Made by a program: the position numbers and the translations under genes. 64,000 nt of DNA, from assembly GCA_043228905.1 (NCBI GenBank), contig JBHGNT010000001.1:29264001-29328000 (forward strand), written 5' to 3'. The notes under the pieces were generated by a model, which saw only the letters and a list, made by a program, of their open reading frames with translations, did not search any database and was not told the DNA's origin. Of this stretch, positions 7,366 through 35,468 are shown one piece after another. The DNA is from Azolla caroliniana (lineage: Eukaryota; Plantae; Polypodiophyta). How positions within the stretch are numbered: the first letter of the stretch is position 1; each line of letters starts with the position of its first letter.

Positions 7366-7437
7366 TTAGTAGTAGCTTTAGTGGTAAGGTAATTGCCTCT
7401 TATCTTAGAGGTGCAAGGTTCAAATCCTACTTGCAAC
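7366..7437 (+). other. tRNA-derived sequence (Pol III A/B boxes) inside LTR D; copy at 10365-10436
   Basis: TAGCTTTAGTGG (A box) and GGTTCAAATCC (B box) at tRNA spacing; CTCTTAT loop resembles Lys-CTT; stems degenerate. Confidence 0.7.
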
Positions 7438-14723: not shown

Positions 14724-14759
<36 letters not shown>

Positions 14760-16370
14760 GCTCACACGCCAAGCACAAAAACGTGAAGGGAAAGCCTCTG
14801 ATGGAAGCGCACGGGCTGTCCACGAAGCAGAGGCGGCGATCTCCCAAAACCCGTAGAGAATGACCACTGAAGGAGGAGAGAGAGAGCTCGGTACACGGTC
14901 CGGCAACACTTCGTCCTCGCTAATCCACGATACCCCCATAGGCCATCGAGGCAGGCCGTTGCACCCTCGTTTTCCTCAAATTATTCTATGTCCTTTCGGA
15001 CAAAGATACTCGTTGATTCCCTGGACTTTCGATGCGTCACATCTAGTCTATTTACACTGACCGTCCTACTCCTAGTTATGTACAAGGTATTAATTAGTGT
15101 GAGAAAGTGTAGGGCCGGTTCATGCGCCCTGCTTCGCCGATTCCGCTTCTGGCCGGTTTTCTTCACGACACCGTTATATTAGTTGTAAAGGCAACCGCTT
15201 TTCTCTCAGATCTTCCCCCAATTCTCTCCCTTCAATGCCCTTTTATTCCTCTCCATCCGCGTGGCCATAAAGTACCTATCAAATCCTTACTACCTAGTAT
15301 TCCTTAACACTCAACTATTACTATGTTATTTATACACGTTTGTACACAAAAGGCAGTCTCAAGTACACCTGTGCACACCCTCGTTCATGTGCATCCGGAT
15401 ATGTTTCTCCTAGTAGTTGGAATTCCTCACAACAACGTATCCCGCAATCAATGAATTCCACGATACATAAATAGGAACCATTTGAATGCTTCTTTAGCAT
15501 ACTCATGTTCATGTTCATCATAATTTGCAATCAACACATTGCAACAAGCTATTCCTTAGAGTGAAACCAAAGTGGTTGCATCCTGAGACAAGCCATCGCA
15601 GCTCCTAACTTTGAACTATTTCAATCCTTCTTCAACATGCTCATAGTTAGCAACATGGAAGGCATGCTACCAAATGTATACATCTAATACAACACCTTTT
15701 GACAGTTTGACTCCACTCATCCTCAAAAAAATGAGAAAAACGCTCCCCAAATTTTAAAAGTAAATGAAAACATAATCAAGTTTCCTTATCACTCCTTAGA
15801 ACTACTTCATCGTCCATCTCTACCACTAACTTAGACTAAAAACATTTTCCTATCAAGATGGCTTCCTAGTAGTGTACAACAAATGTATCCAATATCCCTG
15901 TCACTCCATAAAAAATGCGTCCTCCTCCCATATCATCATCCTTCTCCAACACAAAATTATTTTTATGTTGTTCAAGTCAGTGGATGACTTCCCCAAACAA
16001 AGCCAATCCTTAAACCCCGCTCAATATCTAGTCTAATAGTATTAGTAAATGCAACATCCACCATCAACATCTGTCTATGGTAATTGCACAACAGGAGTGC
16101 ACCATAGTCCATCAACTATACAATAAAATCTATCAACCAAAACGATGTCGTGGATATCCGTGTGTATGTGTCGGAACGGGGTGGGACCAACGGGGCCTTG
16201 AACGAAGCAGTTGGTAAGAGAGGGTGAGGAGTCTTTCCGGAACACTTCGTCGGCACACAGGCTCACATGCTATCGATCCAGACCGGTCACCAGATATCGG
16301 TTGATGGGCACACATGCCCAAATATGTATACTATTTTAGACTACTGCCGGATACCGATTGATGAGCACAT

Positions 16371-16549
16371 GAGCTCAGAAACACAAATAACGCACAAGAT
16401 GGATGAAAACAGGAAAGGGAAATACTGGCTCAACACTGAGATGAGAATCAAACACAACAAACAAATGGATTAAATAACATCGGAATACAGTTGGACTCAG
16501 CCGGCAACAAAGCTTCATGCTCCCGAAGACACGCACAACCACATTGTAG
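16371..16549 (+). repeat. 179-bp target-site duplication, left copy (right copy 30491-30669)
   Basis: Ungapped alignment with 9 mismatches, all transitions; the host LTR continues after the right copy. Confidence 0.92.
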
Positions 16550-16904
16550 GGTTATGGACCTTACGTTTGGAACAAGGAGTGCGGAATGGTGGATCATCAA
16601 CGGGTGGAGGTAGGCGAAGAGGAAACACCACGCTCAATTTGAGCACACCCGAATCGAAGACGAGGTAGAAGAAAGGAGAGGGAGGTGGCATGATTAGGAA
16701 TAACAAAAAGGAAGGGGGGTGGGGAGTTAAACACTAAGATTAAAAACATAAACACTAAAACAAAAAACATAACCTGACAACTAACATACATAAATCTAAA
16801 TCTAGAAACATGAACCTAAAAATAAAGTAAAGGGTGGGGTAATTAGAAAGAAATTAAAAGATAGGGTTAAAGGGAGGGGGATTAACATACTAATTAAAAT
16901 AAAG

Positions 16905-17120
16905 TGAGAGAGAGAGAGAGATTAAAACATAAGTAAACCTAAGATTAAAACTAAAGAGAGAGAGAGAGATTAAAACATAAATAAACCTAAGATTAAAACT
17001 AAAGAGAGAGAGAGAGAGATTAAAACATAAATAAACCTAAGATTAAAATGAAAGAGAGAGAGAGAGAGAGGGAGGGAGAGAGATTAAAATATAAATAAAC
17101 CTAAGATTAAGACTAAAACA
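16905..17120. repeat. ~4 tandem copies of (GA)n-ATTAAAACATAAATAAACCTAAGATTAAAACTAAA in the non-coding unit
   Basis: Direct reading. Confidence 0.85.
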
Positions 17121-18204
17121 TGAGACTAAAAACATAATTAAAATTTAAAACGAGGGTTACGGGGAGGGAAGAGGATTACCATACTAATAAAAATGAAAGA
17201 GAGAGGTGCTATTACGAACTAGAGAAACATAATTAAAACACGATTAAAAGAGAGAGGGAGAGGGGGAGAAACATAATTAAAAACATGTAATTAACATTAT
17301 AAATGAAAAATTACATGGGGTTTGAGGTATGGTCTTATGGCAAACTAGTTTCGCCCATCACGGTGTCGTGAAGAAAACCGTCCATAGGCGGAATCGGCGC
17401 ACCCAGGCGTGGGAACCGGTTCTTCACGCGCACAAGCTCCAAGTTGTACATAGAAGCGAATTAGGAGGATAATCGGCAGGAACGGGCCCTAACACAAGTG
17501 GAGACAAAGACCGCGCGAACAGTCTTTTCGGTCGCGCGCGCGAGCGAAGGAACTGTACGAGTCGGCGGCGTAACTACGCGGACGCGTGAAGGACGGAGCG
17601 GATCCCTGTCCAAAAGGGACAGGGAATAAAGCTGACATGACGGCCTGCTCGTCGGCCTATATAAGGAGCAGGAAAGAGCTGTTGCAGGCATCTCGCGCAG
17701 AGAGGACGAAGTGCTGTCGGACCGTTTCTGGACGCTTCTCTCTCTGTTTCCTTCCTTCTTGAGCTCCATAGCTTTTCTGTGCAGGGTTCCGAGGAGGCTC
17801 GCGCTGTTTCGAGGAACGCCCGAGTGCTTCCGGCAGCACCTCCGACCGACCTGCTACCCCTTTGTGCGTCGAAGCGAACAGGCATCGGCATCTGTTCGCC
17901 GGCCTGTTCGGTTGTAACCAACCTGTGCCCCATCGAGGGTTGTAGTCGTGTTAGCCATTTTTCTTAATATACATATTTAGTCATTCGCATCTGTCTGTGT
18001 CGGTGTCTGTTCGCGTTCTCCGTGCTGAAGGGCCGTGTCCCTGTGTATCCCCGGTCCTGCGTAGCCGGTTCTCTCTCTTTCTCCTCCCTCGCTTGCTCTT
18101 TGGTTCGAGACCCCCGCGGTCCCGCCTCGTTTCCACACGCACTTGCGTAATATCTCGACATCTTTGGTGAACCCGACGTGAAAGAGGCGGCAGAAGAGTA
18201 GAAG

Positions 18205-20331
18205 ATGAGGGGGTCGGATCTTGCAGAGGCCATGGCTTCGGCCGTGGATCGGATTGTAAACGCGCGCGAGGGCACCGGTGCCCTCGACAGAGCTATTGAG
18301 GCGGTCGTCGGCACGATCGGCCGGTTCGATGGGAAGGATGCCACGAAGTATTTGGCGTCCTACGGTGCAGAGATGCTGATGCGGGACATTCCGGAAGAAA
18401 GGCGTCTTGCCGGATTTCCCCGAGTGGCGATGCCGAGCATCCATGCGGAGGTGCTCGAGGTGCGGGCGGAGAGCCGTACCTGGGAGGAGTTCGAAGGTCG
18501 GCTCCTAGAGAAATACGGGCTGGACGACGCGCTCCGGCTTTCGAAGCGAAGGTTCATGGAATGGGTGGAGTCCCCGGGGAAGGGAAGAAACGCGTCGGCA
18601 CTCCTCCGGGAGTTCGAGGAAAACTTTGCGCGCCTTTCGGCGCTCGACCGAACCATCCTGGACACGAGCCGGGTCTTGCTGTTTGTCAAGTCGGTCGACG
18701 AGTGGGATCGGGAGCAAGTGGGCCTCTTGCTGGAAACCGAAGACGGGCTCACTACCGACTGGGCGGTTGTCAAGAAAGTCTGTGGCCGTTTCGACAAACG
18801 GCGAGAATGGGCGGATAACGGGGCAGCCGGGTCGGGCTCGGTCGCAGCAAGGAAGCTCGAACCAGCGCCACAGGTGCGAAAGGAAGAGACCCGAGAGTGG
18901 TTGGAAACCGGTTCGGCTTCGACCGGCGTAGTCAGAGGCTCAACCGGAGGAGCAGCGCTGGAGGAATTGACGAGGGCGATAAAGGACCTCCAAATCGCGC
19001 AAGCCCGAAGGGAAGGTGGCGAACCGGCTCGTGACCGACGGCCGGCGGCAGGAAACAGGTGCATGTGGTGCGATGAAGTCGGCCACATTCGGAAGGACTG
19101 CGGCGACTTCGCGGAGGCGCTGAGGAACAGGGTGGTGTACCTGTGGGAAGGACGGGTGCATGCCAGCGACACCCGAAGGGCCCTGAGCCGAAACGACGGG
19201 CGAGGTGGTATGAAAAGGTTGATGGAAGAGGCGGCGGCCCGACACGCGGAAACCGTCCACTACTCGGCGTCGGCCGGCATTCGAGTCGGGGGCGGCGAGG
19301 CCCGAAGGGAAAGCAAAGCCGGATTCTGGCCGACGATGCTGGAAGGCCTTGCCGGTGCAAGGCTTAAAAGGGAGGAATCGGACCGTGTGGAGAAACGGGT
19401 ATGGGAGATGACCGGGTGGAGCGACCCGGTCGAGGAAAAGACGGGCTTCGTGGAAGCTGCTTGCCAGAACTACGAGGCTCTGGTAGAAGAGAAGCGGGTG
19501 GGGAAACCCGGGACGACCGGGCCCTCACAACGATACGAGACCCGGTCCGGCCCACGATGGGACGAAGCCGGCGAGGCCGGTACGCAAGATAAACCCCAGA
19601 AGGGCGGGTACCGTCTGGGGACGGAGATAGAAAGGACCACGGACTTACGAAAGGTCCTGGAGGAACGGATCCTCGACAGCAAGGTGGAGCTGTCGTTACG
19701 AGAGGTGCTGGGAATCGCCAAGAAGGAGTTCCATGACTCCATCGTGGACTTGGTGAAACGGAAGAGGCTGTCAACGGAGACAGAACCGGAGAGACCGGTG
19801 GAAGTGCGGACGACGCACCTAGACGACATGGCGCTGGGAGACGAGTGGGCGGAAAGCCACTATTCGAGACCACACTGGGCCCGAGCGACCACGGAAACCC
19901 CGGTGAAGATCGGCGATGTCCAGGAACCGGTGATAGCTTTGGTGGACCACGGATCGGAGATCAATTTGATGTCCATGGACTTCTATAAGAAGGGCAAATG
20001 GCCGATCAACACCAAGCACGGGTGGAAAATAAGGGCAGCAACGCGCGCCACCGAGGAACTGCACGGGGCCTGTCCGAATGTGCGAGTCAAGATCGGCGAC
20101 GTCGAGATTGACCAGCACTTCTTCGTGCAGGAGACGTCTTCACATCCGGTCATTCTGGGAGAGCCGTACATCACGGCGGCGCGAATGGAGACCAAAGTGC
20201 TGGACAATGGTTCGGCCTACGCGAGGGTCAAAAGCCAAGACGGGCGCCATTCGGTCCAGTTTCTGACGGTACGGCCGAACCACGAACGTAACCGCGATTC
20301 CCTTGGTTCCGAAAACCGAGAGGATTTTTAG
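18205..20331 (+). CDS. gag: Gag-protease
   Basis: CCHC knuckle CMWCDEVGHIRKDC; aspartic protease LVDHGSEIN. Confidence 0.95.
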   Translation: MRGSDLAEAMASAVDRIVNAREGTGALDRAIEAVVGTIGRFDGKDATKYLASYGAEMLMRDIPEERRLAGFPRVAMPSIHAEVLEVRAESRTWEEFEGRLLEKYGLDDALRLSKRRFMEWVESPGKGRNASALLREFEENFARLSALDRTILDTSRVLLFVKSVDEWDREQVGLLLETEDGLTTDWAVVKKVCGRFDKRREWADNGAAGSGSVAARKLEPAPQVRKEETREWLETGSASTGVVRGSTGGAALEELTRAIKDLQIAQARREGGEPARDRRPAAGNRCMWCDEVGHIRKDCGDFAEALRNRVVYLWEGRVHASDTRRALSRNDGRGGMKRLMEEAAARHAETVHYSASAGIRVGGGEARRESKAGFWPTMLEGLAGARLKREESDRVEKRVWEMTGWSDPVEEKTGFVEAACQNYEALVEEKRVGKPGTTGPSQRYETRSGPRWDEAGEAGTQDKPQKGGYRLGTEIERTTDLRKVLEERILDSKVELSLREVLGIAKKEFHDSIVDLVKRKRLSTETEPERPVEVRTTHLDDMALGDEWAESHYSRPHWARATTETPVKIGDVQEPVIALVDHGSEINLMSMDFYKKGKWPINTKHGWKIRAATRATEELHGACPNVRVKIGDVEIDQHFFVQETSSHPVILGEPYITAARMETKVLDNGSAYARVKSQDGRHSVQFLTVRPNHERNRDSLGSENREDF

Positions 20332-20453
20332 AGAGGACTGCCAAGGCGTGGGGCCGCGACAGTCCGGATGCTCCGGAAAAACCCCACATCTGTACGGTAA
20401 AACCGTGTACAATAGGTAGGAAATTTTGCTTCTCCGACAGCGGAGCATGTACG

Positions 20454-23400
20454 ATGGTCGGCATCACCGGCCGAGAGAAAACAAAGACGGAGGGGAGACT
20501 TCGGGCGTGCGGAGTTCTCGGCCCTGACGAAGGAATCAACGGAGCCGTGGAGGCAGTCTCCTTCGACGACACCTTGGGAATGCTGGGGAAGGTAGTCGAA
20601 GAAGACCTTAACGAAGACCGGACGATACCGGTATGTTCCGAAGAAATGTACGAAGTCATCGCGGACTTCGGTCGAGGGCTCGAGTCGGAACGGACGGCCC
20701 GAGTTAGCACCAAGTACAAGACTGTGGACCGGAAGGTGAGGCCAGTTGCGGCGCCCTTACCGGAGGGCAGCGAATCCCGAATCAAAGGGGTTGCATCGGA
20801 CCCCAGCTTACGAGATCCGGCCTGCATAGGACACACCTTCACCAACGAGACGCTCCGCGAGCTGAAGGTCGGTGGGGGCGGGTTCCTACTGCCGGCGGAG
20901 GAAGACCGGTTTCGGAGAATGCTCGGAAGGCACGGGAAAGCCTTCGCATTCTCGCCGGAGGAAATCGGGTGCGTGGACCCGACGATCGTAGAGCCGATGG
21001 TGATATTCACGGTACCGCATGTACCGTGGAATCTCAAGCCAATTTCGGTTCCGAGAGCTCACATCCCGAAGTTGATGGAGCTGTTGAAGCAGAAAGTTGA
21101 TATGGGCATTCTCGAGCCGTCGAGCGCCCCGTATTCAAACCGCTGGTTTACCGTACCAAAGAAAAACGGATCATTGCGCTTCATTCAGGACCTGCAGCCG
21201 GTCAATAGAGTGACCATTCGGAACGCAGGGATCGGACCGACCATAGACGAGTTCGCGGAGGCCTTCGCCGGAAGGTCGATTTACTCGGTCGGTGATCTAT
21301 ACTCAGGGTACGACCAGTTCCAGCTAGCCGTGGAGAGCAGAGACATTACGACGATGCGAACTCCCCTCGGCCTAGTGCGGATGTGTACGCTTCCGCAAGG
21401 AGGGACCAACTCGGTGGCCCACATGGTGAATGCGATGAACAAGGTGCTGAGGGACTGCATCCCGGACATCACCATGCCGTTTCTAGACGACATCCCGATC
21501 AAGGGATGCCCGGTAGAAGAGAAGGACGAGACGATCGGGCCGGACGGATGCCGGCGATTCGTGATGACGCACATCGACGACTGCGAGAAGGTGCTGCAAA
21601 GGCTAGAGGATGCGAGGCTCACCTTCTCGGGGGAGAAATCAGCCTTCGGGCAGTCGGAAATCATGGTGGTCGGACACTTATGTGGGCCATATGGCTGGAA
21701 ACCGTCTCCGGCAAAGGTAGAAGCCATCTCCGCGATGAAGCCCGACTGCAGCTCGGTCACGGAAGTACGAAGATTCCTGGGGGCATGCGCATTCTACCAC
21801 ATATGGATCCCGCATTACGCCCACGTTGCGGAGCCGCTATACGGATTATTGAAGAAAGGGCGAAGATTCGAATGGCTAGACAAGCACACGGAGTCGGTCC
21901 GGAAGCTGAAGGAGGCTCTTTCGGCAGCACCGGCGCTCCGAAAGGCCGTCTACAGGAAGGGCATCCCAGTGTACATAACGGTTGACACGAGTCCGACCGG
22001 AATCGGGTGGGTCGTCAACCAAGAAGACGAGGACGGCAATCGGTTTCCGATCCGATTCGGCGCGAAGGTCCTCAGTGAGCGGCAGCGAGGATACGCCCAG
22101 GTTAAACGCGAACTCTGGGGTATCGTTTCGGCGGTGAAGGCCGACAAGGACTATCTGATCGGGACAGAGGTAATCATAGAGACGGATTGCATGCCGATTC
22201 TCGGCATGGTTTCCGGATGCGCGACGCCGGACCTAGCAATGCTCAGGTGGATAGCGTACATCAAGTCCCTGGACCCGGGAATACGACACATTTCCGGGAA
22301 AGACAACGCCATGGCCGACATGCTTTCAAGGGCGAGATTCGATGACGAGGGCGGCATGGTTTCGGAGGACGAAGAGGTCGGCGTGGACTTCTTCGAGACT
22401 GCGTATGTGACAACCGACGGAACAAGCACTTCGGCGCTTAACGACTTCGACGCGAGCAAGTACGACGGGGAGTGGTTGCAGATCGGTGGGTTTTTGAAGA
22501 CAATGACGCCCGATGCGTCATGGACGAAGGACGAGGCCAACCGGATCCGGAAGAAAGCGTACCGGTTCTTTCTCCGGGATGGATACTTGTGGAGGCACCC
22601 GAAGAAGAGGAACGGCGTCCCGCTCCGGGTGGTGGCAATGAAGGAAGATCAGGAGGAGCTGCTAGCGGCCTACCACGACAGCCCTTGGGCTGGACACCGT
22701 GGAACATGGGCTACGTTTGAGAAATTGAAGGGGAAGTATTGGTGGCCGGGGCAGTACCAGGACGTGCATCGGTTCGTGACAACTTGCGAGAGCTGTCAGA
22801 TGCACTCCATAGTCCGACATCGAGACGAGCTTCACCCTACGTACCCTCCGGCCATCCATTTCAAATGGATGGTAGATCTGGTAACGATGCCAATGGGAGT
22901 AGGACAGATGCGGTACCTGGTCCTAGCGCGGGAGGATCTGACGAACCAGGTGGAAGGCCGGGCCCTTCCGAACAAAACGACCGCGGCCGTATGTCGGTTC
23001 CTAATCGAGGACGTGATATGCCGGTACGGGTGCGTCGGGAAGATCGTGGCTGACCGAGGGGAGTTGGACGCCGAAGAAGCCGCGGAGCTGTTGGACCGGC
23101 TGGGAGTCAAGCTCTCGCTCACCACTGCGTACAATCCGGAGGCGAATGGAAAGGTGGAGCGCGGACACGGGCCGATTGTCAAGGCGCTGGTTCGAGCATG
23201 CGGAGGCCGAGTTGGTAACTGGCCGCGGCTGCTACCTTATGCTTTGTGGGCGGACCGGACTACGCACAGTTCGGTAACCGGGTACATGCCGACGGAGCTC
23301 ATGTTCGGCCAGAAGCCGATCATGCCGATGGAACGGACGATCTCCTCATGGGCAACGGTCGATTGGAGGGACGAGATGAGCCGGGAGGAGTTGTTGGCCG

Positions 23401-23810
23401 CGCGTATACGACAACTCGAGCGGAGACCGGAGGACGTGGAACTGGCTGCGGAGAAGCTCCGGGTGGCGAGGACAAAGAACAAAGCCAGGTTCGACCGAAC
23501 GCACCGGCTCCGACCGAAGAAAATCGAAGAAGGTGACTGGGTGCTCGTCTACGACAGCAGCCTCGACAACCAGCACCGAGCCACACGGAAGTTCGCACGA
23601 AGGTGGTTCGGGCCTTACGTGGTACGGAGCGCCAATGACAACGGGACATATCACCTGGCGGAACTCGACGGCACGAGAGTGGCGATACCGGTTGTAGGGA
23701 AGCGGATCAAAGCGTTCAAGAAGCGACATTACGACGAGCCAGACCCGGCTCTCCTAGTCAGCAGTGACGAACGATCCGAAAACGAGGAAGAACCGACGGG
23801 CGAGGAATGA
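20454..23810 (+). CDS. pol: Pol (RT-RNaseH-IN), probably reached by -1 frameshift at ~20322-20328
   Basis: LPQG and FLDD RT motifs, RNaseH TVDTS/ETD, IN HHCC and DDE; frame is open back to the gag stop. Confidence 0.95.
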   Translation: MVGITGREKTKTEGRLRACGVLGPDEGINGAVEAVSFDDTLGMLGKVVEEDLNEDRTIPVCSEEMYEVIADFGRGLESERTARVSTKYKTVDRKVRPVAAPLPEGSESRIKGVASDPSLRDPACIGHTFTNETLRELKVGGGGFLLPAEEDRFRRMLGRHGKAFAFSPEEIGCVDPTIVEPMVIFTVPHVPWNLKPISVPRAHIPKLMELLKQKVDMGILEPSSAPYSNRWFTVPKKNGSLRFIQDLQPVNRVTIRNAGIGPTIDEFAEAFAGRSIYSVGDLYSGYDQFQLAVESRDITTMRTPLGLVRMCTLPQGGTNSVAHMVNAMNKVLRDCIPDITMPFLDDIPIKGCPVEEKDETIGPDGCRRFVMTHIDDCEKVLQRLEDARLTFSGEKSAFGQSEIMVVGHLCGPYGWKPSPAKVEAISAMKPDCSSVTEVRRFLGACAFYHIWIPHYAHVAEPLYGLLKKGRRFEWLDKHTESVRKLKEALSAAPALRKAVYRKGIPVYITVDTSPTGIGWVVNQEDEDGNRFPIRFGAKVLSERQRGYAQVKRELWGIVSAVKADKDYLIGTEVIIETDCMPILGMVSGCATPDLAMLRWIAYIKSLDPGIRHISGKDNAMADMLSRARFDDEGGMVSEDEEVGVDFFETAYVTTDGTSTSALNDFDASKYDGEWLQIGGFLKTMTPDASWTKDEANRIRKKAYRFFLRDGYLWRHPKKRNGVPLRVVAMKEDQEELLAAYHDSPWAGHRGTWATFEKLKGKYWWPGQYQDVHRFVTTCESCQMHSIVRHRDELHPTYPPAIHFKWMVDLVTMPMGVGQMRYLVLAREDLTNQVEGRALPNKTTAAVCRFLIEDVICRYGCVGKIVADRGELDAEEAAELLDRLGVKLSLTTAYNPEANGKVERGHGPIVKALVRACGGRVGNWPRLLPYALWADRTTHSSVTGYMPTELMFGQKPIMPMERTISSWATVDWRDEMSREELLAARIRQLERRPEDVELAAEKLRVARTKNKARFDRTHRLRPKKIEEGDWVLVYDSSLDNQHRATRKFARRWFGPYVVRSANDNGTYHLAELDGTRVAIPVVGKRIKAFKKRHYDEPDPALLVSSDERSENEEEPTGEE

Positions 23811-24698
23811 AGACGGGCCGGTTTTCTCCGTCCCAACTCTCTTGGCGCATACCGGAGGATGCGCGGTTAGGTGGGGGCGGATGTCGTGAAGAAAACCGTC
23901 CATAGGCGGAATCGGCGCACCCAGGCGTGGGAACCGGTTCTTCACGCGCGCAAGCTCCAAGTTGTACATAGAAGCGAATTAGGAGGATAATCGGCAGGAA
24001 CGGGCCCTAACACAAGTGGAGACAAAGACCGCGCGAACAGTCTTTTCGGTCGCGCGCGCGAGCGAAGGAACTGTACGAGTCGGCGGCGTAACTACGCGGA
24101 CGCGTGAAGGACGGAGCGGATCCCTGTCCAAAAGGGACAGGGAATAAAGCTGACATGACGGCCTGCTCGTCGGCCTATATAAGGAGCAGGAAAGAGCTGT
24201 TGCAGGCATCTCGCGCAGAGAGGACGAAGTGCTGTCGGACCGTTTCTGGACGCTTCTCTCTCTGTTTCCTTCCTTCTTGAGCTCCATAGCTTTTCTGTGC
24301 AGGGTTCCGAGGAGGCTCGCGCTGTTTCGAGGAACGCCCGAGTGCTTCCGGCAGCACCTCCGACCGACCTGCTACCCCTTTGTGCGTCGAAGCGAACAGG
24401 CATCGGCATCTGTTCGCCGGCCTGTTCGGTTGTAACCAACCTGTGCCCCATCGAGGGTTGTAGTCGTGTTAGCCATTTTTCTTAATATACATATTTAGTC
24501 ATTCGCATCTGTCTGTGTCGGTGTCTGTTCGCGTTCTCCGTGCTGAAGGGCCGTGTCCCTGTGTATCCCCGGTCCTGCGTAGCCGGTTCTCTCTCTTTCT
24601 CCTCCCTCGCTTGCTCTTTGGTTCGAGACCCCCGCGGTCCCGCCTCGTTTCCACACGCACTTGCGTAATATCTCGACAACGGGCTCATCAGTGCCAAC

Positions 24699-24867
24699 CA
24701 TAGTTCTAGCCATACGTCCCATTCGTGTCATACTCAAACGCCAATATTCGTATCATACTCATACGTGAAAAGGCTCCAAGTATGATTGAAATCCATACGC
24801 GGTACATAGATATATTATATATACATATGGTGTATATGGTGTACATAGTGTGTGTGTGTTTGAGGGG

Positions 24868-24928
<61 letters not shown>

Positions 24929-25310
24929 TGTGTGATCTAGAGAGAGAAGCCCTGTTTTGCATGTGTGAGGAGACAGTGATTGAGTGTATATCTAGACTCT
25001 AGAGAGAGAGAGAGAGAGGAGCTATGGGTTTTGTCTGTGTGAGGGAGTATGTAATATGTATATTAGATATCTAGATTTTGTAGAGAGAGAAAATCTGTCA
25101 GTTCTCGTGAGAGAGAGAGAGAGAGAGTGTGTGTATGTGTGTCAGATGTCACTTCTATTCACAAAATATTATGAATATCAAAAATTTAAAAAACTAAAAA
25201 AAAGTCAAAAAAGAAGAAGAGCCAAACGAATATCGCGTATCATACGCGTACGTTTGCAAACGTTCGCGTACGTCCAGTAAATTGGATGTACGTGAATATT
25301 AGGAACTATG
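24699..25310. mobile_element. hAT-type MITE (612 bp) with (GA)n tracts
   Basis: TIR CATAGTTC/GAACTATG; 8-bp TSD GTGCCAAC at 24691-24698 and 25311-25318. Confidence 0.9.
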
Positions 25311-25345
25311 GTGCCAACATAAGACCATGAGGGTAAGGGAGGGGG

Positions 25346-25353
25346 TTTATATA
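25346..25353 (-). promoter_or_regulatory. TATA box of the inverted non-coding unit
   Basis: TATATAAA ~34 nt upstream of the reconstructed HHR core, after a C-rich tract; mirrors 30254. Confidence 0.6.
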
Positions 25354-25833
25354 GGATTTTAGGAGAGGGGTATAGTGAGGGTGTGGGATCAAAGTTGGGA
25401 GTGGGGAGCAAGGGTGTGCTATGTGCATATGTGCACATTTAAGGGAGAAAAAGATAGTGGGATGTAAGTTTTAAGGTTTTTTAAGGATAGGGAAAAGGGA
25501 ATGGTAAGAGGGAAGGAGTGAGAGGGTATGGGAAAGAGTGTAGGGAGAAGTGAGAGAGAGGGGGAAAGGGATGTGCATATGTGCACACGTGCATGTGCAT
25601 GTTTTAAGGAAGGAGGGGTAAAGTTGTTATAAGCTAGGGAAAAGGGAATGGTGATGTGGGCACATGTGTGGGGTTAAAAAGTAAGAGAGAGGGGAAGGTA
25701 TGGGTTAAAAAAGAAGAGAGAAGGGGAAGGTAGAGTTTTAAGAGAGATGAGGGGTAGGGATAGGGATACGATTTAGGGTTTGCCTTACGGCTTTGCAAGG
25801 AGTGCGAGTCGACATACCGCTCGAATACGGAGC

Positions 25834-27660
25834 ATGTCCACTCTTGATAGCAATGGGCCCCCCGAACCCATTACTACCGTAGATGTAACTAGGACCCCCC
25901 AAAAAACTACGAGTACCCAGGTAATCTCCAATGAATCACCGCTAATTTCCCAACACTTTGAAGATTACAAGTGTGGAATAATAGCAGAGTTTAAAAGCCT
26001 CTATCAAAAAGCACAAAAAGAAAAAAGAACATACACTCGTATGTCAAACCTAAATTCGCATAATATAGCCCCTCATAGCTTGAGAATCCAACCCCCTAGA
26101 CTAGTTATCAAACACGAAGATATTAATAAAAGTTTACACCTAGAGTTTGCTTCCATTACAACACAATATAGTAAAGATCTCACTATCGCCTATGTTAAGC
26201 ATTTAGACAGCCTTGTGCATTATTATACTAAAATTGTAGATGACTTTCCCACAACCGTGCGAACAGATATACTCAAGCTTGCTAATCTCCTAAAAGCCCC
26301 CACTTGTTTTGACATAATAGAACCCGATTCAAACCCAAACTCATTTAGCAAACAACTTGAAGATTTCAGAGAAAAATTTGCCACTAATATTTTAAAAGAA
26401 TGTAATACAATAGCTCTATCATTCACTTATAAGGAAGCCTTTAGAACTGCTGCAATGCAAACAAGAGATAAAGCACAATTAAAAAACAACAACACTCAGA
26501 GCACAAGCAAGCACCATATTAGAGAGATAGACCTAGATATGGAGTCTGAAGATGATAGTGAAAAGTTAGTAGATAGTTTTGAGAAAGAACAATATGACAA
26601 ATTTCAGTTTACATCTCATCACAATAACCTTAACTTGAGAACAAACCCTAACTCTACCTCTAACTCTAACCCTAACCCTAACTTGAAAAAAAACCCTAAC
26701 TCTAGAATAAACCCTAACCCTAACCCTAACTCGAGAATAAACCCTAGCCCTAATTTCAAAACAAACCCTAACCCTAACCCTAACCCTAATTTCAAAACAA
26801 TCCCTAACCCTAACTTGAGAACCAACCCCAACCCTAACCCTTGGCCTCGAACAACAAACCCGAAACCTCTTCCACCACAAATTAAGCGTGGATCATCCAA
26901 CCACCACAACCATCCTCAATTCATCTGCAACATAAATAATAATGAAGTTAGCATGAACCCTTATCCTAACAACCTCAATCATAGAAACCCAAAAGTATTA
27001 TTCTATAGACCCAATGGCCTTTCGATAGGCCCGAACACAAACTCAGCCCACCTCCACCATAACACAAGGATAACACCAACATTCCCGAACTCCAACTTCA
27101 CCACATATGTTTCCCCTTATACAGGTCCATCGCATCATCCACCACAGGATCTCCATCATCGACCATCACAACTTTTTGGTGGTGGTGGCGGCAATGACAT
27201 CAACCACCATACGCTAGCTTGGCCACACAGCTCACACGGAGTACCCCCATCTCTAATCCATACTTTCCACTCATCGATCACACCTGTTGGTTTCTCGTCA
27301 GCCCTACAAAACCACCAACAACACGATGGATTAAAGCTAAAGACGGGTGGCGATGTTCTCGACTCGGCGCGTACAGTTGACTATAGAGGCGTCGACCTCC
27401 CCCATTCTCACCTTCCCCCCTTGCTCTCCAGCCCTCCTCTGTATACTGAGCCCCTCAAAGCCTCTCATCCCTCCTCCTTTGCCCCTCAATTTTCTTTCCC
27501 TCCTCCTACAATAGGGCAACATAATCCATCCCCCTTTCCTTATTCATGGCCACTACACCCACACCCCTTTCACTCTCAAAACCCTCCCACATTTTCTACA
27601 AATTCCTTGTATACACACACTCTCTCTCTCTCCAACCTAACCCCCTCTGTTACTTTCTAA
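25834..27660 (+). CDS. PLE ORF1: helical N-terminal half, Asn-Pro repeat, Pro/His-rich tail; function unknown
   Basis: Uninterrupted ORF (first ATG 25834) directly upstream of the PLE RT, with the same C/A-rich strand bias. Confidence 0.75.
   Translation: MSTLDSNGPPEPITTVDVTRTPQKTTSTQVISNESPLISQHFEDYKCGIIAEFKSLYQKAQKEKRTYTRMSNLNSHNIAPHSLRIQPPRLVIKHEDINKSLHLEFASITTQYSKDLTIAYVKHLDSLVHYYTKIVDDFPTTVRTDILKLANLLKAPTCFDIIEPDSNPNSFSKQLEDFREKFATNILKECNTIALSFTYKEAFRTAAMQTRDKAQLKNNNTQSTSKHHIREIDLDMESEDDSEKLVDSFEKEQYDKFQFTSHHNNLNLRTNPNSTSNSNPNPNLKKNPNSRINPNPNPNSRINPSPNFKTNPNPNPNPNFKTIPNPNLRTNPNPNPWPRTTNPKPLPPQIKRGSSNHHNHPQFICNINNNEVSMNPYPNNLNHRNPKVLFYRPNGLSIGPNTNSAHLHHNTRITPTFPNSNFTTYVSPYTGPSHHPPQDLHHRPSQLFGGGGGNDINHHTLAWPHSSHGVPPSLIHTFHSSITPVGFSSALQNHQQHDGLKLKTGGDVLDSARTVDYRGVDLPHSHLPPLLSSPPLYTEPLKASHPSSFAPQFSFPPPTIGQHNPSPFPYSWPLHPHPFHSQNPPTFSTNSLYTHTLSLSNLTPSVTF
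26625..26840 (+). repeat. Degenerate (AACCCT)n telomere-like tract encoding NPNPNP
   Basis: Direct reading. Confidence 0.85.
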
Positions 27661-27990
27661 TATTCCCCAACCTAACCCCCTTCCCCCTTTTTGTAATGAC
27701 CCCCATCCATATTTTCCCCCGAACACTTTGTATAATTCTGGTCTTACCCCTCCCCCTATTTTTAACACAGCCCCCTCCCCCCCTAATATCTTCACACACT
27801 CCCTCTCCTTTCTTAATAATTCCACACATGCACCCCCCCCCTTTTTCTCACATAATTTGAAAAATAATACCCCTCCCCTTTTTCCTAATTCTAACTCGTT
27901 TGCCCCTACCACACACCCATATAATAAATCAAACCCCCATAGCTCTTACAAACCCCCCCCTCACCCCCAAACTAAAACTCGGTCATATAC

Positions 27991-30000
27991 ATGTAGACCA
28001 AAAAACGGGTAGCGAGGCGTGCTAAACGAATTAGTAAACGTTTTAAGCATGCCTTGCACCCTTGTAAGCGTCTCTTTTACATACTAGATAGGCCCCCCTT
28101 AACTTGTGATACCTACATGTGGCTAGGTAGAACAAACTCTCATTTCCCCTTCTCCCCTTACACTAAATCACACACTAAAAAGTCAAATACTAAAAAACCA
28201 CGAACCAAATTTTGGACTCCCCTCCTTAGGAAACCTGTAATTAATAGTAGGATACACAATCACTCTGATTATACCCTCTCCAAACACGAGACACAACTCC
28301 TCAACCTAGGTTTGAAACACATCCTCCCATCTTCCCCACCTCCACCTCTTATCCTACTTAAAGAATTTGATAGCCTTAGTAGGACCCTCCGACTTAAACA
28401 CTTTTTCAAAGATGAGGATAATTCCCCCCTAAATCCCTTTAAACTACCTAACCCTAGTTGGCAACCCCCTACTAAATACATACCCCTAGAAAACATTATA
28501 GTTAAACATCAAACTCTCTTTAGTAATACACTTCATACACTCAAATTAAAACCCACTAGGATTCCACTCCACTTATTACAAGCCTTACAATCTCTTAAAA
28601 ATAACAATAGAATCATAATTTTACCCGCGGATAAAAACGTTGGAGTTTATGTTCTTAACAAAGACACATACTATAACAAAGCTGTAGAACACCTTTCTGA
28701 TTCTAATACCTATAGAGTAGTTTCCCACTATCCACTTGAAGAGTTATCATATAGACTTAAAAAGATTGTTAACAACCATCTAGGTACCTTATCCACCATA
28801 GAAGCCAACTACATACTACATAAGCCCTCAACAGGATACCAAGTATGCAATCTCTACTTCTTCCCCAAACTCCAGAAGAACCCAATGGGCTTTAGACCTA
28901 TTTGTTCATATAATAACTCTCTTTTTGAACAGACGTCTAAATGGCTTCACCACCAACTCATGCCAATCCTTCTCCTTCAAAAACAATATTTGAAAGACTC
29001 ACACTCCCTTATCCAAACTCTAGAACATCTTAAACCACCCCCTAATAGCTTTATCTTTACCTTTGATGTTGAATCCTTATATCCTAGCATCCCCCCTAAG
29101 CTAGGTCTAGAAGCCTTACGAAAAATCATTACCCCCCATTTTTCGACTTCTAAAACTAACCTTATTTATACACTTAGCGCACTCGCATTAGAATATCACT
29201 TTCTCTCTTTTGACGACGTAATTTATCAACAAGTAAAGGGTACAACCATGGGTAGTAATTTTTCTGTAGTATATGCTTGCCTTTTCTTAGCTCACTTAGG
29301 GAATTCGCAACCACCACACCCAAATCTTTGCTTTTTCACTAGATATATAGATGACGCTTTCGGAATATGGACGGGTACTAAACTCGAGTTAGAAAATTAC
29401 CTTCAATTCTATAATACCTCTACTAATAATTGTATCAAACTTACCATCACCACTTCCCCCTCTAGATTACCCTTCCTAGACTTATGGATTAACCTAGAAA
29501 ACTCAAAATTCTCCTTTAATTGCTACCAAAAGCCCCAAAATGCTTACCAATATCTCCCGTTCTCGTCAGAACACCCTCTTCATTTAAAAAGACATTTTAT
29601 TATTAATGAACTAAAATGATACCTAATTAGAGAAAGCACTCCTTTAGGTTTCCATTGAATGAAAAAACTATTTTTTACTAGACTAATTACGAGAGGATAT
29701 CACCCTTCTTTCATAAAAGAGAATTATAAAAATGTCCCCTTTAGGGTTAGGAAATCACTAATATATAGTAGGAAACCCAAAAGTACTCTTCTACCCGTTA
29801 TCTTCAAACTTAGATATACACAAGATACCCCTAAGATAGGAATTCACGACATGCTAAAAAACCTCCACGAGGATTTACTCTTAGATCCCAAACTATCTCA
29901 GATACCTAGACCTTTTGTGTGTTGGACTAAGTCCAAGTCCATTCACTCTTTTTTGGTCAAAATTAAATATAAAAGGTCATCCCCAAAATCTCTTACTTAA
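27991..30000 (+). pseudogene. Penelope-like reverse transcriptase, no GIY-YIG endonuclease; 3 in-frame stops (27994, 29617, 29656)
   Basis: LNLGLK, PADKN, FPKLQK..FRPICS, FDVESLYPSIP, QVKGTTMGS, RYIDD, PFLDL, YQKP..YLPFSSEHP, RLITRGY. ORF ends shortly after SIHSFLV with no GIY-YIG on either side. Confidence 0.93.
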
Positions 30001-30253
30001 CACTACACATTTACTTACTTATAACCCCCCACTTATGCATAACACACCCCCACTTATTACTTACCATAATCTCCCACTTTTCATAGCCCACCCCCACTTA
30101 TTACTTAGCATACACATACTTATAACCCTCCAGTCTTCTTAGCCCACCACCACTTTGTATCATTCAACTGCCTACCATTACCCCCTTCTTCTCTCTCCCA
30201 TCACTAACTCTTATTTCTCCTCTCTCCCTCTCCCTCTCCCACCTCCCCCACCT

Positions 30254-30261
30254 TATATAAA
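30254..30261 (+). promoter_or_regulatory. TATA box in PLE pseudo-LTR
   Basis: TATATAAA 30 nt upstream of the HHR core. Confidence 0.6.
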
Positions 30262-30282
30262 GCTACACCCATCTTGTAATAG

Positions 30283-30335
30283 ACCTTTGCACTGATGAGC
30301 TCATTCTTGAGCGAAACTAGTTTGCTGCATAAGGT
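30283..30335 (+). ncRNA. Type I minimal hammerhead ribozyme (PLE pLTR type)
   Basis: ACCTTTGCA-CTGATGA-GCTCA-TTCT-TGAGC-GAAAC-TA-GTT-TGCTGCATAAGGT; palindromic stem III AAACTAGTTT. Confidence 0.92.
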
Positions 30336-32691
30336 ATTTCTTTTCATTCTAATGATATTTTCTTGAGTCTCTCTCTCTCTCCCCCCCCCCCCCCCCTTTG
30401 GTACTCACAATCTATTTTCTTCCTATTAGATTATCTACCCTATTACTACGTCGCTCGCACTCCTTGTAACGACCCAACAGTTGACAATAAGAGCTCAGAA
30501 ACACAGATAACACGCGAGATGGATGAAAACAGGAAAGGGAAATACTGGCTCAACACCGAGATGAGAATCAAACACAACAAACAAATGGATTAAATAACAT
30601 CGGAATACAGTTGGGCTCAACCGGCAACAAAGCTTCACGCTCCTGAAGACACGCACAACCACATTGTAGTGGGCCTATGATCGGGAGCACACGGGCTTCC
30701 AACGCGAAACAGAGGCCTCACCACCATGCAACAGATACACAAAGTAGAAATCAACAAAGCTCGGTCCGGTAGCACTTCGTTCTCCAAAATTGTGGATCCT
30801 TCTTCCGTCTTCCACCCCTCCTTTTATAGCTTGAGGAGCGAGAGAGGAGTCGTTACATCAGGTCGTTAAGACAACCGCTTTTTGTCCTTGATTCTCTCCT
30901 CGATTTCCTCCAATCAATCACCTTTATTCTTCTCTATTCATGTGATCATAAAGTACCTATTAAATCACTCCTACCTAATATTCATCAACATTCCAAATAT
31001 GTTATTTACAAATGTTTCTACATAAAGACAATTTCGTGTGCATCCGGGCACACCCCCGTTCACGCGCATTCGGTGAGTTTCCTCCTAGTAGCCGGAATCC
31101 TTCAGAACATCCACCCCACCAAACCGCACATCCTTCGGCATGTGCCAAGTAGTGAAGCGGTGGGGATTCCAGGTCAGTCTTCACTCGTCCTCTCCCAAAC
31201 CGTCGTCGATCTGGTCCTCATCCGGCTCCTCGCCCTCGTCGACGCTTTTGACCTCTTTCTCCGGATTTAGTTCCACTTTGTGGCGTTTCTTGAAGGCCTT
31301 AATCCCCTTTCCCACACTCGGTACCGCTATCCTCATCCCGTCGAGCTTCGCAAGGTGGTACATCATATTGTCATTGTTGCTCGTCACCACATACGAAATG
31401 AACCACCTCCTCGCGAACTTCCGGGTCGACCGATGTTGGTTGTCAAGGCTGTTGTTGTAGACCAGCATCCAGTCGCCTTCCTCGATCTTCTTCGGTTGGA
31501 GTCGGTGCATCTGGTCGAACCGGCCCTTGTTCTTCTTCCTCGCCTCTTCCACCATCACCATCGCTCGCTCCATGTCCTCAGGCCTTCGCTCTAGCTGTCG
31601 GATCCACGCTGTCAACATCTCCTCCTGACTCATCTCGTTCGACCAGTCGATCGACATCCATGAGGCTATTGTCCACTCCACCGACATAATCGGCTTTTGC
31701 TCGAACATGAGTTCGACTGACATGTATCTTCCTGATGCATCCATACCAGCAGATCACGTCTTTGATTAGGAACCGGCATACCGCTGTTGTTGTCTTGTTC
31801 GTCAGGTCCTCTCTTGCAAGCACCAGGTACCGCATCTGTCCCACCCCATTGGCATCGTCACGAAATCAACCATCCACTTGAAGTGAATGGTCAGGGGTAA
31901 GTCGGGTGCAACTCATCGTGGTACCGGATCGCTGAATGCATTTGGCAACTCTTAGACGTCGACATGAAGTGTTTCACATCTCTATACGGTTCCGACCACC
32001 AATACTTCTTTTTCAACTTCTCGAACGTGGCCCATGTTCCCTAGTGTCCAGACCAGGGACTCTCGTGGAACTCCGACATGACTATTGCCTGGTCCTCTTC
32101 CTTTGTCACCACTCAGAGTGGTGTGTTAGTCCGCTTCTTTGGATGCTGCCAGATCTTCCCGTCTTGTAGAAAGAACTTGTATGCCTTCTTCCGGATCCAA
32201 CTCACTTCTTCCTTTTTCCACGATGTGTCTAGTGACATAGTTGTCGTGAAGATCCGTCACTAGGCGCGGATCGCGAGGCGGAACCGCCGGGGTTTTGGAC
32301 CGGAAGGATCGAAGTTCTCACCAAGCTTAGCGAGAAAGTATTTAAGATAGATTGAGAGAGAGAAAAAGATTAAGATTAAGCGCTTGACTTAGATTGAGAA
32401 AGATTGATATGGCCAAGAGAGAGATATTGAGATTAAGATTTTAACTCTTGATTTAAGAAACAAGATATATCATCAATGAGTTTTCTTCTTATTAATTTTC
32501 TTAGTTCATACATGGATCCATAATACATTTTCATCCATCTTTTTATAGATGCCCCCATGCATATGATGCATGTTTGCCATTTGGCGCTCGTGTATTACAT
32601 GTGGTGCATGATAACCATGTCACTCATTTTAGCTCTCATGCATAAGAATTTACATGTAAAAGTACGATGATAGAAATATAATTTTAACTAA

Positions 32692-32762
32692 ATATCTTGG
32701 CTCAATGGTAAGCCAATTGACTCCTAACTTGGAGGTGCAAGGTTCGAATCCTTACTTGCCTT
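32692..32762 (+). other. tRNA-derived sequence in LTR E
   Basis: TGGCTCAATGG (A box) and GGTTCGAATCC (B box); homologous to the tRNA-like part of LTR D. Confidence 0.72.
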
Positions 32763-34362
32763 CCTTGTATATGTATATATATATATATATTTATCTAGTC
32801 GTCAGATGTCGGTTCCACCGGCTAGCTGGTTCCGCCGGATCATCGGTGTGCCACCGTCGCTTTGTCGGCTGTCGCCGGCTCCATCGCTGGTTTGGCCAAA
32901 ACCTTTATAAGTGGCTAGGCCACCTCCACTCTTAGTTACAGTTACCTTGAACTCTTACATAGAGAGTTCAAATAGACACAAAGATAATAGCTTTTGCTCT
33001 ACCTTATATATGATGAGAGCCGTATTTGTCGTGCCTATGTGGGATATCTCACAATTTTCTCTTTTCCTTTCACAAACTTTATACCCTCATATCTTGACAT
33101 CTAGTTGTCCGTTTCTCGTGTAATAAAGTGCATTCGAAAGCTCTTGAAGGCCTCCATCATTTTGTACTTAGATATTAAACTTATTTAAAATGTTATCTTC
33201 AGTATTATTGTTTTATGTGATTCATACTCGATTTTGTACGTTTTATGTGATTTTCACACCATTGCCGAAAATCTTCACGACATCCACCCCCACCAAACCG
33301 CACGTCCTCCGGTACGTGCCAAGAAGAGAGAAAGTGAGATTTCGGCTACGGTGGTCAATCAAATTCCTCCATGTCTTCATTTACATCCACCCTATTATGT
33401 TCATCGTTGAGGTGATCAAGGTCAAGATCCTCGTCTTGTCTTTTCTTGAAAATCTTTACTCTTTTTCCCGCAATGGGTACGGCCAACCTTGATCCGTTCA
33501 GCTCCGCAAGGTGGTATGTGGCATTATCGTTGGCACTTGTCACCACATACGGCCCGAACCATCTTCTTGCGAACTTTCTTGTTGTATTGTGTTGATTGTC
33601 AAGGTTGCTGTCGTAAACCAAAACCCAATCTCCTTCTTCAATCTTCTTGGGACGAAGTCGATGCGTGTTGTCGAACCGAACTTTGTTCTTTACTCGGGCT
33701 GCCTCCATCATCTTTCACACTTTTTCTAGATCTTCAAGTCTTCTTTCAAGTTGCCTTATCCGCGCCGCTAATAACTCTTCTCGGCTCATCTCATTCTCCC
33801 ATGGTATCGCTACCCATGAGGCGATCGTCCTTTCGATGGGCATTATCGGCTTTTGTCCATACATAAGCTCCATCGGCATATACCCTGTCACCAAGCTGTG
33901 TGTCGTTCTGTCGGCCCACAAGGCATAGGGTAATAGTCGTGGCCAATTCCCGACTCGACCGTTGCATGCCTGTACGATGGCTTTGACGATAGGTCCATGC
34001 CCTTGCTCGATCTTCCCATTCGCTTCCGGATTGTACATAGTCGTGAGGGAGAGCTTCATGCCTAGTCGTTCGAAGAGCTCCATCGCTTCGTGCGCATCAA
34101 ACTCCCCTCGGTCGACCACTATCTTCCCCACACATCTGTATCGGCAAACAACCTCTTCAAGTAGAAATTTGCAAACGGTTGAAGTCGTCTTATTTGTCAA
34201 GGCTCGTCCTTCCACTTGATTTGTCAAGTCTTCCCTTGCCAGCACTAAGTACTTCATTTGTCCTACTCCCATTGGCATTGAGACCAAATCCACCATCCAT
34301 TTGAAGTGTATGGTGAGTGGGTATGTCGGTTGTAACTCATCACGATGACATATATTTGAATA

Positions 34363-35088
34363 TGTTGGGAAATAGGTCCCTCCGGATGGGAAGGGAGAAG
34401 CATAGTGCCGATGAACAAACTCGGCCGAGGCCGAGACCGGATGAGGAGTACCCGGTTACGGAGAGCTGGATGGTACAGACCCGGTATGAACCGGATGAGG
34501 AGGACCCGGCTACGGAGAGCCGGATGGTGCAGACCTGGTATGAACCGGATGAGGAGGACCCGGCTACGGAGAGCCGGATGATACAGACCCGGTGAAGACC
34601 GGATGAGGAGTACCCGGCTACGCAGAACCGGATGAAGAGACATATTCGTAAATATGTTTTCTGATAGTCCATCGAGGCTATATTTGTAAATAGCCGAAAA
34701 GTTATATTAGTATAAATATGACTTAGGGCAAACTCTTAGTGTTGTTGTCATTTTCTTGTTGGTGCAAGAAGAAGAGTGAGCACGTAACAATGTACAGAGA
34801 GAGAGAGAGAAAGAGGTCGTTGCCTCTGTTGTAACCGCCGCCCGTGGCGAAGATCGTGAGCACGAGGTCGTTGCCTTCATGAACTCATTGTTTTGTACAT
34901 TCCAACTTAGTAATAGTTTGCAGCCTGTGGGCTGCCGTGGTTTTTCCCTCTTTGGGCTTTCCACGTAAACATTCTGTGTACCCTTTTCTCTCCTTTGTGT
35001 CGCGTGTTTTCGTTTCCTGTTTTCTGTGTATGAAAAGAATCTCGGTTGTGGCCGAGCATTGTGCATAAGGAGCGTTGAGTTCCCGTCA
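34363..35088. mobile_element. Solo LTR family A (inverted relative to 2828-3624)
   Basis: 5-bp TSD GAATA; interrupts the IN motif CQIYS|NICHRDEL. Confidence 0.9.
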
Positions 35089-35468
35089 GAATATATTTGG
35101 CAAGTTTCGCATGTGGACACGAAATGGAGTACATCTTTGTACATGCTTGGCCACCAATACTTCTCCTTCAACTTTTCGAACGTCGCCCATGTTCCTCTAT
35201 GACCTGCCCAAGCACTCTCGTGGAATTCGGTCATCAGCGTCTCTTGCTCTTCTTTCTTCACCACCACTCGACGTGGTATTCCTGTCCTTCTTTTTGGATG
35301 TCGCCAAAGGAATCCTCCCTTCAAGAAGTATCGGTAAGCTTTCTTCCGGATTCGTAGGGCCTCCTCCTTTGTCAACGAAGCATCTGTCATCAATGTTCTT
35401 AGGAATCTACCAATGAGTAACCACTCTCCTTCGTACTCATTCTCGTTGAAGGCGTGGAGGGTTTGCGT

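Follow-up and report, generated by a model that had tools for sequence, protein, structure and literature searches.

Two different endonuclease-less Penelope-like elements lie head-to-head within a 179-bp duplication at an internal site in Azolla caroliniana

Background

A 64,000-nt stretch of the Azolla caroliniana genome (GenBank assembly GCA_043228905.1, contig JBHGNT010000001.1, positions 29,264,001 to 29,328,000 of the forward strand; hereafter the window) carries an insertion in which two different Penelope-like elements (PLEs) lie head-to-head inside a 179-bp duplication. One is a decayed coding element on the plus strand (the + unit); the other belongs to a gene-less family and lies on the minus strand (the minus unit). 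The reading that we favour, with moderate confidence, is that one old event joined two different endonuclease-less PLE RNAs at this internal site, and that the 3' overhangs of a break staggered by 179 nt each primed one of them through microhomology. PLEs without an endonuclease have been described as confined to chromosome ends, and the origin of the tandem and inverted structures of PLEs in general is unsettled. The locus is a natural footprint of integration. An earlier reading of the same DNA, here called the original prediction, had proposed a dedicated system of two components, in which the coding unit mobilises a ribozyme-bearing satellite RNA.

Results

Boundaries of the insert

The insert occupies positions 16550 to 30490 of the window (13,941 nt). 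After removal of a nested gypsy element and of an element resembling a miniature inverted-repeat transposable element (MITE) it measures 6,002 nt, which confirms the bounds and the net size of about 6 kb given by the original prediction. It is bracketed by a 179-nt direct repeat, the two copies of which align with 9 differences, all of them transitions (~95% identity), and abut exactly the 3' termini of both PLE units; the proposed joint insertion of the two units is supported by this arrangement. The features that make up the insert and its borders are the following (an arrow gives positions in minus-strand direction; ORF, open reading frame; RT, reverse transcriptase).

16371-16549, no strand assigned: left copy of the 179-bp target-site duplication (from alignment)
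16550-17363, minus strand: 3' part of the minus unit, with tail-end motif CGCACTCCTTG (16583->16573), a decayed hairpin and CT-rich repeats of 48-64 nt
17363->17331, minus strand: 3' half of the predicted minus hammerhead, predicted cleavage between 17343 and 17342
24683-24698, minus strand: middle piece of the predicted minus hammerhead, CTGATGAG at 24691->24684, between the gypsy and the MITE-like element
25311-25771, minus strand: 5' part of the minus unit, with the 5' strand of stem I (25326->25311), TATA box (25353->25347) and C-rich tract
25772-25781, minus strand: one plant-type telomere unit, AAACCCTAAA, at the joint of a third tail-end and the truncated minus unit
25777-25886, minus strand: fragment c, the last ~110 nt of a third PLE-type 3' end, with CGCACTCCTTG (25806->25796) and a GCC/GGC hairpin, in tandem with and upstream of the minus unit
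25887-30490, plus strand: the + unit, a 5'-truncated, decayed PLE, putatively endonuclease-less (from homology to contigs L001-L007, ORFs and motifs)
up to 27660, plus strand: remnant of ORF1 (from homology)
26612-26838, plus strand: block of CCCTAA-like repeats in ORF1 (from sequence)
27661-28053, plus strand: broken stretch of ORF1 (from frame analysis)
28054-29616, continued in frame at 29659-30000, plus strand: RT ORF, with TGA stops at 29617 and 29656
30254, plus strand: TATA box TATATAA, following the C-rich 3' region
30282-30335, plus strand: predicted hammerhead, predicted cleavage 30322/30323
30454-30464, plus strand: tail-end motif CGCACTCCTTG with a small hairpin, after the CT tract; the unit ends with GACAATAA
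30491-30669, no strand assigned: right copy of the 179-bp target-site duplication (from alignment)

The 3' ends of both units face outward, as priming from two 3' overhangs predicts, and both outer ends of the insert lie 8-14 nt beyond the motif formed by CGCACTCCTTG and its hairpin. At each junction the duplicated target resembles what follows the tail-end in intact relatives. On the left, the final 7 nt of the duplication copy (ATTGTAG) are complementary to the bases after the tail-end in the closest relative of the minus unit, contig L027; read in the direction of the unit, intact relatives have TTACAAT beyond the terminus and the target has CTACAAT. On the right, intact members of the + family have AAGCT after the tail-end and the duplication copy starts with GAGCT.

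Neither a third copy of the 179-nt repeat nor a second copy of either unit was found in the 64-kb window, and the 179 nt presumably were a single-copy target before the insertion. The locus is interstitial: the target is not telomeric and lies in a gypsy-rich stretch, not at a chromosome end as is the rule for PLEs without endonuclease. The event is old: divergence between the copies of the duplication amounts to 5%, and stops are present in ORF1 as well as in the RT frame. As pure speculation we mention that 179 nt is about the length of one nucleosome repeat, and that nicks in the two linkers around one nucleosome would yield such a stagger.

The + unit and its reverse transcriptase

Over about 25887 to 30490 the + unit matches the coding contigs L001-L007 of public assemblies with 91-96% identity, and its identity to the family whose intact RT has 627 aa is 93-96%; the related contigs used here and below are short-read assemblies. 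Intact relatives have an uninterrupted ORF1 of 805-819 amino acids (aa) and an RT of 627 aa (P0001), to which the RT in the window is 96% identical. The + unit lacks about 200 nt of the family head, including the ATG of ORF1. In L001-L005 the 3' end reads directly into the "head" that opens the next ORF1, i.e. tail and head are continuous. The CCCTAA-like hexamers in ORF1 of this family are read as (NP)n, and the frame is open in intact relatives (819-aa ORF1 of L004), which makes them a translated telomere-like repeat.

The RT was assigned by means of its homologues, of precomputed Pfam marks and of a profile comparison; none of the Pfam profiles run here matched the RT of the + family, and phmmer with the single RT found no match in PDB. 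A profile of the family did match RTs and TERT in PDB (E=0.002). A total of 139 RT homologues was collected, among them PLE proteins that bear a GIY-YIG endonuclease domain. In an unrooted FastTree tree of 111 homologues the RT of the window falls into a well-supported clade with proteins of Selaginella, Ginkgo and Cryptomeria, and all 15 GIY-YIG-bearing proteins fall into a separate clade; built without an outgroup and without labelled Athena, Coprina or TERT sequences, the tree shows only this plant endonuclease-less clade. The residues A-D-K are invariant in an alignment of 20 RT sequences. The N-terminal ADK(N/G)/DKG motif is specific to PLE-type RTs, which are related to TERT.

A search with PF01541 detected no GIY-YIG domain in the + unit nor in intact relatives of 612-636 aa, and the endonuclease-bearing control protein P0051 scored in the same search. 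The RT relatives, whether close or distant, lack the domain, and the second caveat attached to the original prediction, full-length relatives that encode GIY-YIG, thus does not apply. Sequence comparison thus supports an RT of the endonuclease-less PLE kind, in agreement with the original prediction.

The minus unit and its gene-less family

With the nested elements removed, the minus unit runs from 25771 to 16550 and measures 1,283 nt. It consists of a C-rich tract, the sequence TATATAA, a predicted hammerhead and a 778-nt tail with CT-rich repeats of 48-64 nt, in which CGCACTCCTTG lies 30 nt from the end; no ORF of at least 80 aa was found in it. In the region from TATA box to hammerhead it is 66% identical to the 3' region of the + unit. 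Elsewhere, with the exception of the 11-nt 3' motif, the alignment is at the level of shuffled sequences, and the minus unit is therefore not a simple inverted copy of the + element, just as the original prediction had stated. When compared by blastn with four coding families (L001-L013), it matched in the hammerhead only.

A pattern scan with the minus type of hammerhead retrieved 16 contigs (L015-L030), in none of which tblastn revealed similarity to RT or ORF1. The closest relative, L027, is 86-87% identical to the minus unit and holds a complete unit of 1.65 kb between two tail-ends, composed of a head of about 540 nt, C-rich tract, TATA box, hammerhead motif and tail, without any ORF of at least 70 aa outside the tail. 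Homology of the minus unit to L027 stops at about 25768; as the ~540-nt family head is missing, the copy in the window is 5'-truncated. More distant gene-less relatives (L025, L026, L030) form arrays with periods of 2.36-2.40 kb, and no contig of tandem gene-less units spans two hammerheads of one array. The gene-less heads can be aligned to those of three coding families, and the alignment takes in the ATGGAGG with which ORF1 begins. Coding and gene-less families have in common this head with the ORF1 start, the hammerhead core and the 11-nt 3' motif. Both families are multi-copy, as seen from short Logan contigs. In L025 (817-1035) the ORF1 start is kept along with an open frame of 72 codons, the start of which is homologous to ORF1 of the coding families.

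Judged by its sequence, the minus family, with units of 1.65-2.4 kb, is a set of RT-less internal-deletion derivatives of PLEs, i.e. non-autonomous PLEs and not a special satellite. Members of the family would depend on the RT of another element. A caveat attached to the original prediction was that the minus unit might derive from the 3' end of another PLE of the ordinary, coding kind; it does not, given that its relatives are whole units that lack both an RT and the body of ORF1.

These results bear directly on the dedicated two-component system, in which an RT element and a ribozyme satellite RNA would regularly be packaged and integrated together, the satellite being retrozyme-like, of unit length and possibly circular. 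The features common to the coding and gene-less families (hammerhead, head and 3' motif) agree with it, and so do the insertion of both units within one duplication and the dimer predicted for a purified PLE protein (PMC11167929). Nevertheless, we hold such a system to be unlikely and do not maintain this part of the original prediction. In the 16 related contigs the gene-less family is seen on its own, in tandem and together with telomere repeats, with no RT nearby; the inverted pair is found in none of the 33 related contigs; the 5' truncation of the two copies in the window is random; and the gene-less units with their ORF1 start look like ordinary deletion derivatives.

Predicted hammerheads and the shared 3' motif

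Rfam reported no hammerhead in the window, neither at the gathering threshold nor at E<=10, and our call is based on pattern, invariant core, alignment and counts of stem pairs. Among 11 variants, drawn from coding as well as gene-less families, the core CUGAUGA...GAAA does not change. In the stems 93.6% of the cells pair, versus 30-41% when the partners are slid. Stem II has a U-A pair in one group and a compensated C-G pair in the other (coding versus gene-less), and the distal part of stem I varies in sequence yet is complementary within each sequence. Helix III is made of two pairs around UA, which yields the palindrome ACUAGU. On these grounds both units are predicted to carry a type-I hammerhead motif. 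A type-I hammerhead with this form of helix III has been reported for PLEs of Selaginella and is thought to need a dimer (PMC4209133). Once rejoined across the nested elements, the minus hammerhead has the length and the stems of uninterrupted copies in L027 and in one Logan contig of a related organism.

The motif of CGCACTCCTTG plus hairpin stands at the unit ends in 30 related contigs. Covariation in the 3' hairpin did not exceed that of shuffles; the hairpin is conserved, and it is conservation, not covariation, that we claim. In a contig of run X14, guessed to be RNA, the base after the + hammerhead is fused to the start of the tail-end motif (window 30325-30451) and the 125-nt CT tract is skipped. 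The contig without CT tract represents either a shorter variant of the family or a processed form.

The inner joint

The original prediction let the + unit begin at 25772. Its ORF1, RT, C-rich tract, TATA box, hammerhead and tail stand, but not its start, since 25777-25886 is not part of it but a third 3'-end fragment in inverted orientation (fragment c) and homology to the + family begins only at about 25887. Where this third tail-end meets the truncated minus unit, a single telomere unit is found. A like layout of tail-end, (CCCTAAA)n and next unit is present in L025, L026 and L030 with about 130 nt of telomere repeat, and has been described for endonuclease-less PLEs that add to G-rich overhangs (PMC8557442). 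Next to tail-ends, either after or before them, (CCCTAAA)n was seen in L025, L026, L028, L030 and L032; the window has one unit only, at the internal joint. In gene-less and coding relatives alike, blocks of (CCCTAAA)n on the sense strand reach up to ~130 nt between tail-end and next unit (L025:620-750; also L026, L030, L023, L028 and L032). In L025 and L026 the composite of tail-end and telomere repeat recurs with a period of ~2.37 kb, and the joint of telomere addition has thus been propagated within the unit.

The joint brings up a second explanation, namely two successive insertions, of which the first made the duplication and the second landed exactly at the 5' end of the first, for example if an exposed or fragile PLE end attracts additions as it does in telomeric arrays. 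Endonuclease-less PLEs do form arrays of 5'-truncated copies with telomere repeats between them (PMC8557442), and the joint of tail-end, CCCTAAA and truncated unit is present within the minus part. The second insertion, however, must then have landed precisely where the 5' end of the first unit meets the duplicated target, with neither a duplication nor a deletion of its own. Growth of an array would moreover give units in the same orientation and not head-to-head, and each outer end of the insert is a genuine 3' terminus that shows microhomology to one and the same duplicated target. We therefore give this course of events little credence.

Discussion

A possible course of the insertion

The course of events that we consider probable would start with two nicks on opposite strands, 179 nt apart, leaving two DNA ends with 3' overhangs of 179 nt; overhangs of this kind are needed because the geometry demands a top strand ending at 16549 and a bottom strand ending at the equivalent of 16371. 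The top-strand 3' end would anneal over ~7 nt to the RNA of an RT-less PLE just downstream of the 3' motif and prime the complementary DNA (cDNA) of the minus unit. The template of the minus unit may already have had a tail-end and a telomere repeat upstream, or the RT may have jumped onto such an RNA. The bottom-strand 3' end would anneal over 4-5 nt to the RNA of an autonomous PLE and prime the cDNA of the + unit. Both cDNAs would end before the 5' head and be joined, and fill-in of the overhangs would yield the 179-bp duplication. The RT would have come from an autonomous PLE, either the one inserted here or one related to it, and would have acted in trans on the gene-less RNA. Afterwards transitions would have accumulated (the 5% between the duplication copies, the stops in both ORFs), and the MITE-like element and a young gypsy would have entered the minus hammerhead.

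Biochemical and comparative data are in line with this proposal. In purified form, a PLE protein is able to extend both strands of the DNA, and it initiates reverse transcription at an internal position of the RNA (PMC11167929); and an inverted, 5'-truncated partner next to a PLE is a usual feature in the published record (PMC8557442). Several points weigh against it. The evidence comes from one locus, and the empty site was not recovered. The 33 related contigs without an inverted pair have all their motifs in one orientation, but short-read contigs break at such structures. Extension of two strands has been shown for an endonuclease-bearing element that cuts both strands with its own enzyme (PMC11167929). 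Finally, the microhomologies are short, and they were compared with relatives and not with the actual templates.

It is very unlikely that the composite formed elsewhere and was copied as a block, be it by a read-through RNA over the inverted pair or as DNA filler in break repair, between flanking repeats that pre-existed in the host: the region is dense in repeats and Logan depth over the right flank is non-zero, but a single RNA has one true 3' terminus whereas here the left boundary, too, is a family 3' terminus with microhomology, and the two 179-nt copies, the only ones in the window, end exactly at the insert.

Comparison with known systems

The closest counterparts of the coding unit are the endonuclease-deficient PLEs of plants of the Selaginella type, which like the + family have an RT without GIY-YIG, and with which the RT described here clusters (Selaginella, Ginkgo, Cryptomeria). 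The Selaginella elements also carry, in their 3' repeat region, a hammerhead of type I in which helix III has 2 bp and the palindrome is ACUAGU (PMC4209133). In Athena and Coprina elements (CCCTAAA)n on the sense strand accompanies 3' ends and hammerheads, as it does in the relatives studied here (PMC8557442). Endonuclease-deficient PLEs have been described from chromosome ends; this copy, in contrast, sits at an internal site within a 179-bp duplication. The + family furthermore differs from Selaginella-type, Athena and Coprina elements in its long ORF1 of 805-819 aa with a translated CCCTAA-like block.

In the usual PLE structure a pseudo-long terminal repeat (LTR) is combined with a further copy that stands inverted at the 5' end and is itself 5'-truncated (Evgen'ev and Arkhipova; Craig et al. 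2021, PMC8557442). Here, too, the units are head-to-head with their 3' ends outward, both are 5'-truncated, and the partial tandem on one side is represented by fragment c and the minus unit. The inverted partner is ordinarily the same element; in the window it comes from another, RT-less family. Moreover, the usual structure is attributed to the endonuclease, which this lineage does not have, and the duplication measures 179 bp.

A process known as twin priming, which Ostertag and Kazazian reportedly described for L1 in 2001, is said to let both 3' ends of a staggered target prime cDNA; the outcome is an inverted 5' segment followed by a 3' segment in direct orientation, the whole flanked by target duplications. 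L1 twin priming involves one RNA and the endonuclease of the element. The two units of the window match different families and not the same RNA; in our proposal two RNAs would each be primed at their own 3' recognition region, without an element endonuclease and with a stagger about ten times longer. Target duplications of more than 100 bp, as here, are attributed to the R9 retrotransposons of rotifer ribosomal DNA (Gladyshev and Arkhipova 2009, as cited in PMC8557442). Unlike the units studied here, R9 belongs to the site-specific non-LTR retroelements and encodes an endonuclease.

The gene-less units resemble the non-LTR retrozymes of animals and the non-autonomous Chlamys elements (MRC1), which lack an RT, retain the PLE 3' region with its hammerhead, form head-to-tail arrays and presumably use a PLE RT in trans (PMC8557442; bioRxiv 10.64898/2026.07.22.740005; PMC5680766). 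Non-LTR retrozymes, however, are a few hundred nt long, whereas the units described here have 1.65-2.4 kb, keep a 5' head with the ORF1 start, reside in a plant host and belong to an endonuclease-less lineage.

Three features are new at this locus: the partner comes from a different family without genes, the duplication is long, and the site is internal although the lineage has no endonuclease. The head-to-head habit itself was already known. If the proposed course is true, extension of both target strands can do without an endonuclease of the element's own, gene-less PLE derivatives of plants use the 3' recognition region of their coding relatives, and retroelements of telomere type are able to settle at internal breaks. 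With one old copy only, the locus is at present a generator of hypotheses and not a result. A bolder and rather doubtful extension is that the RT of endonuclease-less PLEs might work as a two-sided machine, which would as a rule take up two RNAs, frequently an autonomous one together with a gene-less one, and extend both 3' ends where nicks already exist at a distance of about one nucleosome repeat. Head-to-head pairs of heterologous elements, with duplications of ~180 bp, would then be recurrent, and diagnostic of telomere-type elements that colonise the interior of plant chromosomes.

Nested elements and neighbourhood

Two younger insertions interrupt the minus hammerhead.

17364-24678, plus strand: young Ty3/gypsy element with 797-bp LTRs (99.9% identical) and a 4-bp duplication, ACGG, at 17360-17363 and 24679-24682
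24699-25310, no strand assigned: 612-bp MITE-like, hAT-like element with inverted ends CATAGTTC...GAACTATG and an 8-bp duplication, GTGCCAAC, at 24691-24698 and 25311-25318

The MITE-like element entered stem I of the minus hammerhead, and its own Logan depth far exceeds that of the PLEs. A copy with 84% identity in L014 (70-532) abuts a 5'-truncated PLE RT fragment and is hence a second case beside or inside PLE sequence. The same contig, with its PLE RT fragment and MITE copy, has a coverage of 61x, as compared with 3-20x for other contigs, and could be organellar, a nuclear-plastid mosaic or a misassembly; at 8891-10694 it contains ndhG-, ndhI- and ndhA-like genes in plastid order. A basidiomycete origin of the window, which DUF4100 and the CCCTAA hexamers might suggest, is contradicted by these plastid genes in a related contig, by the land-plant source of the nearest named RTs and by the telomere unit CCCTAAA.

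The gypsy element entered loop II of the minus hammerhead. Its coding part comprises gag (DUF4100) and pol (RT, RNase H, integrase). A purine-rich tract precedes the 3' LTR, and the two 797-bp LTRs show 1 difference. Two older gypsy relatives, 70-78% identical to it and in opposite orientation, flank the locus at 4075-15170 and 31281-38778.

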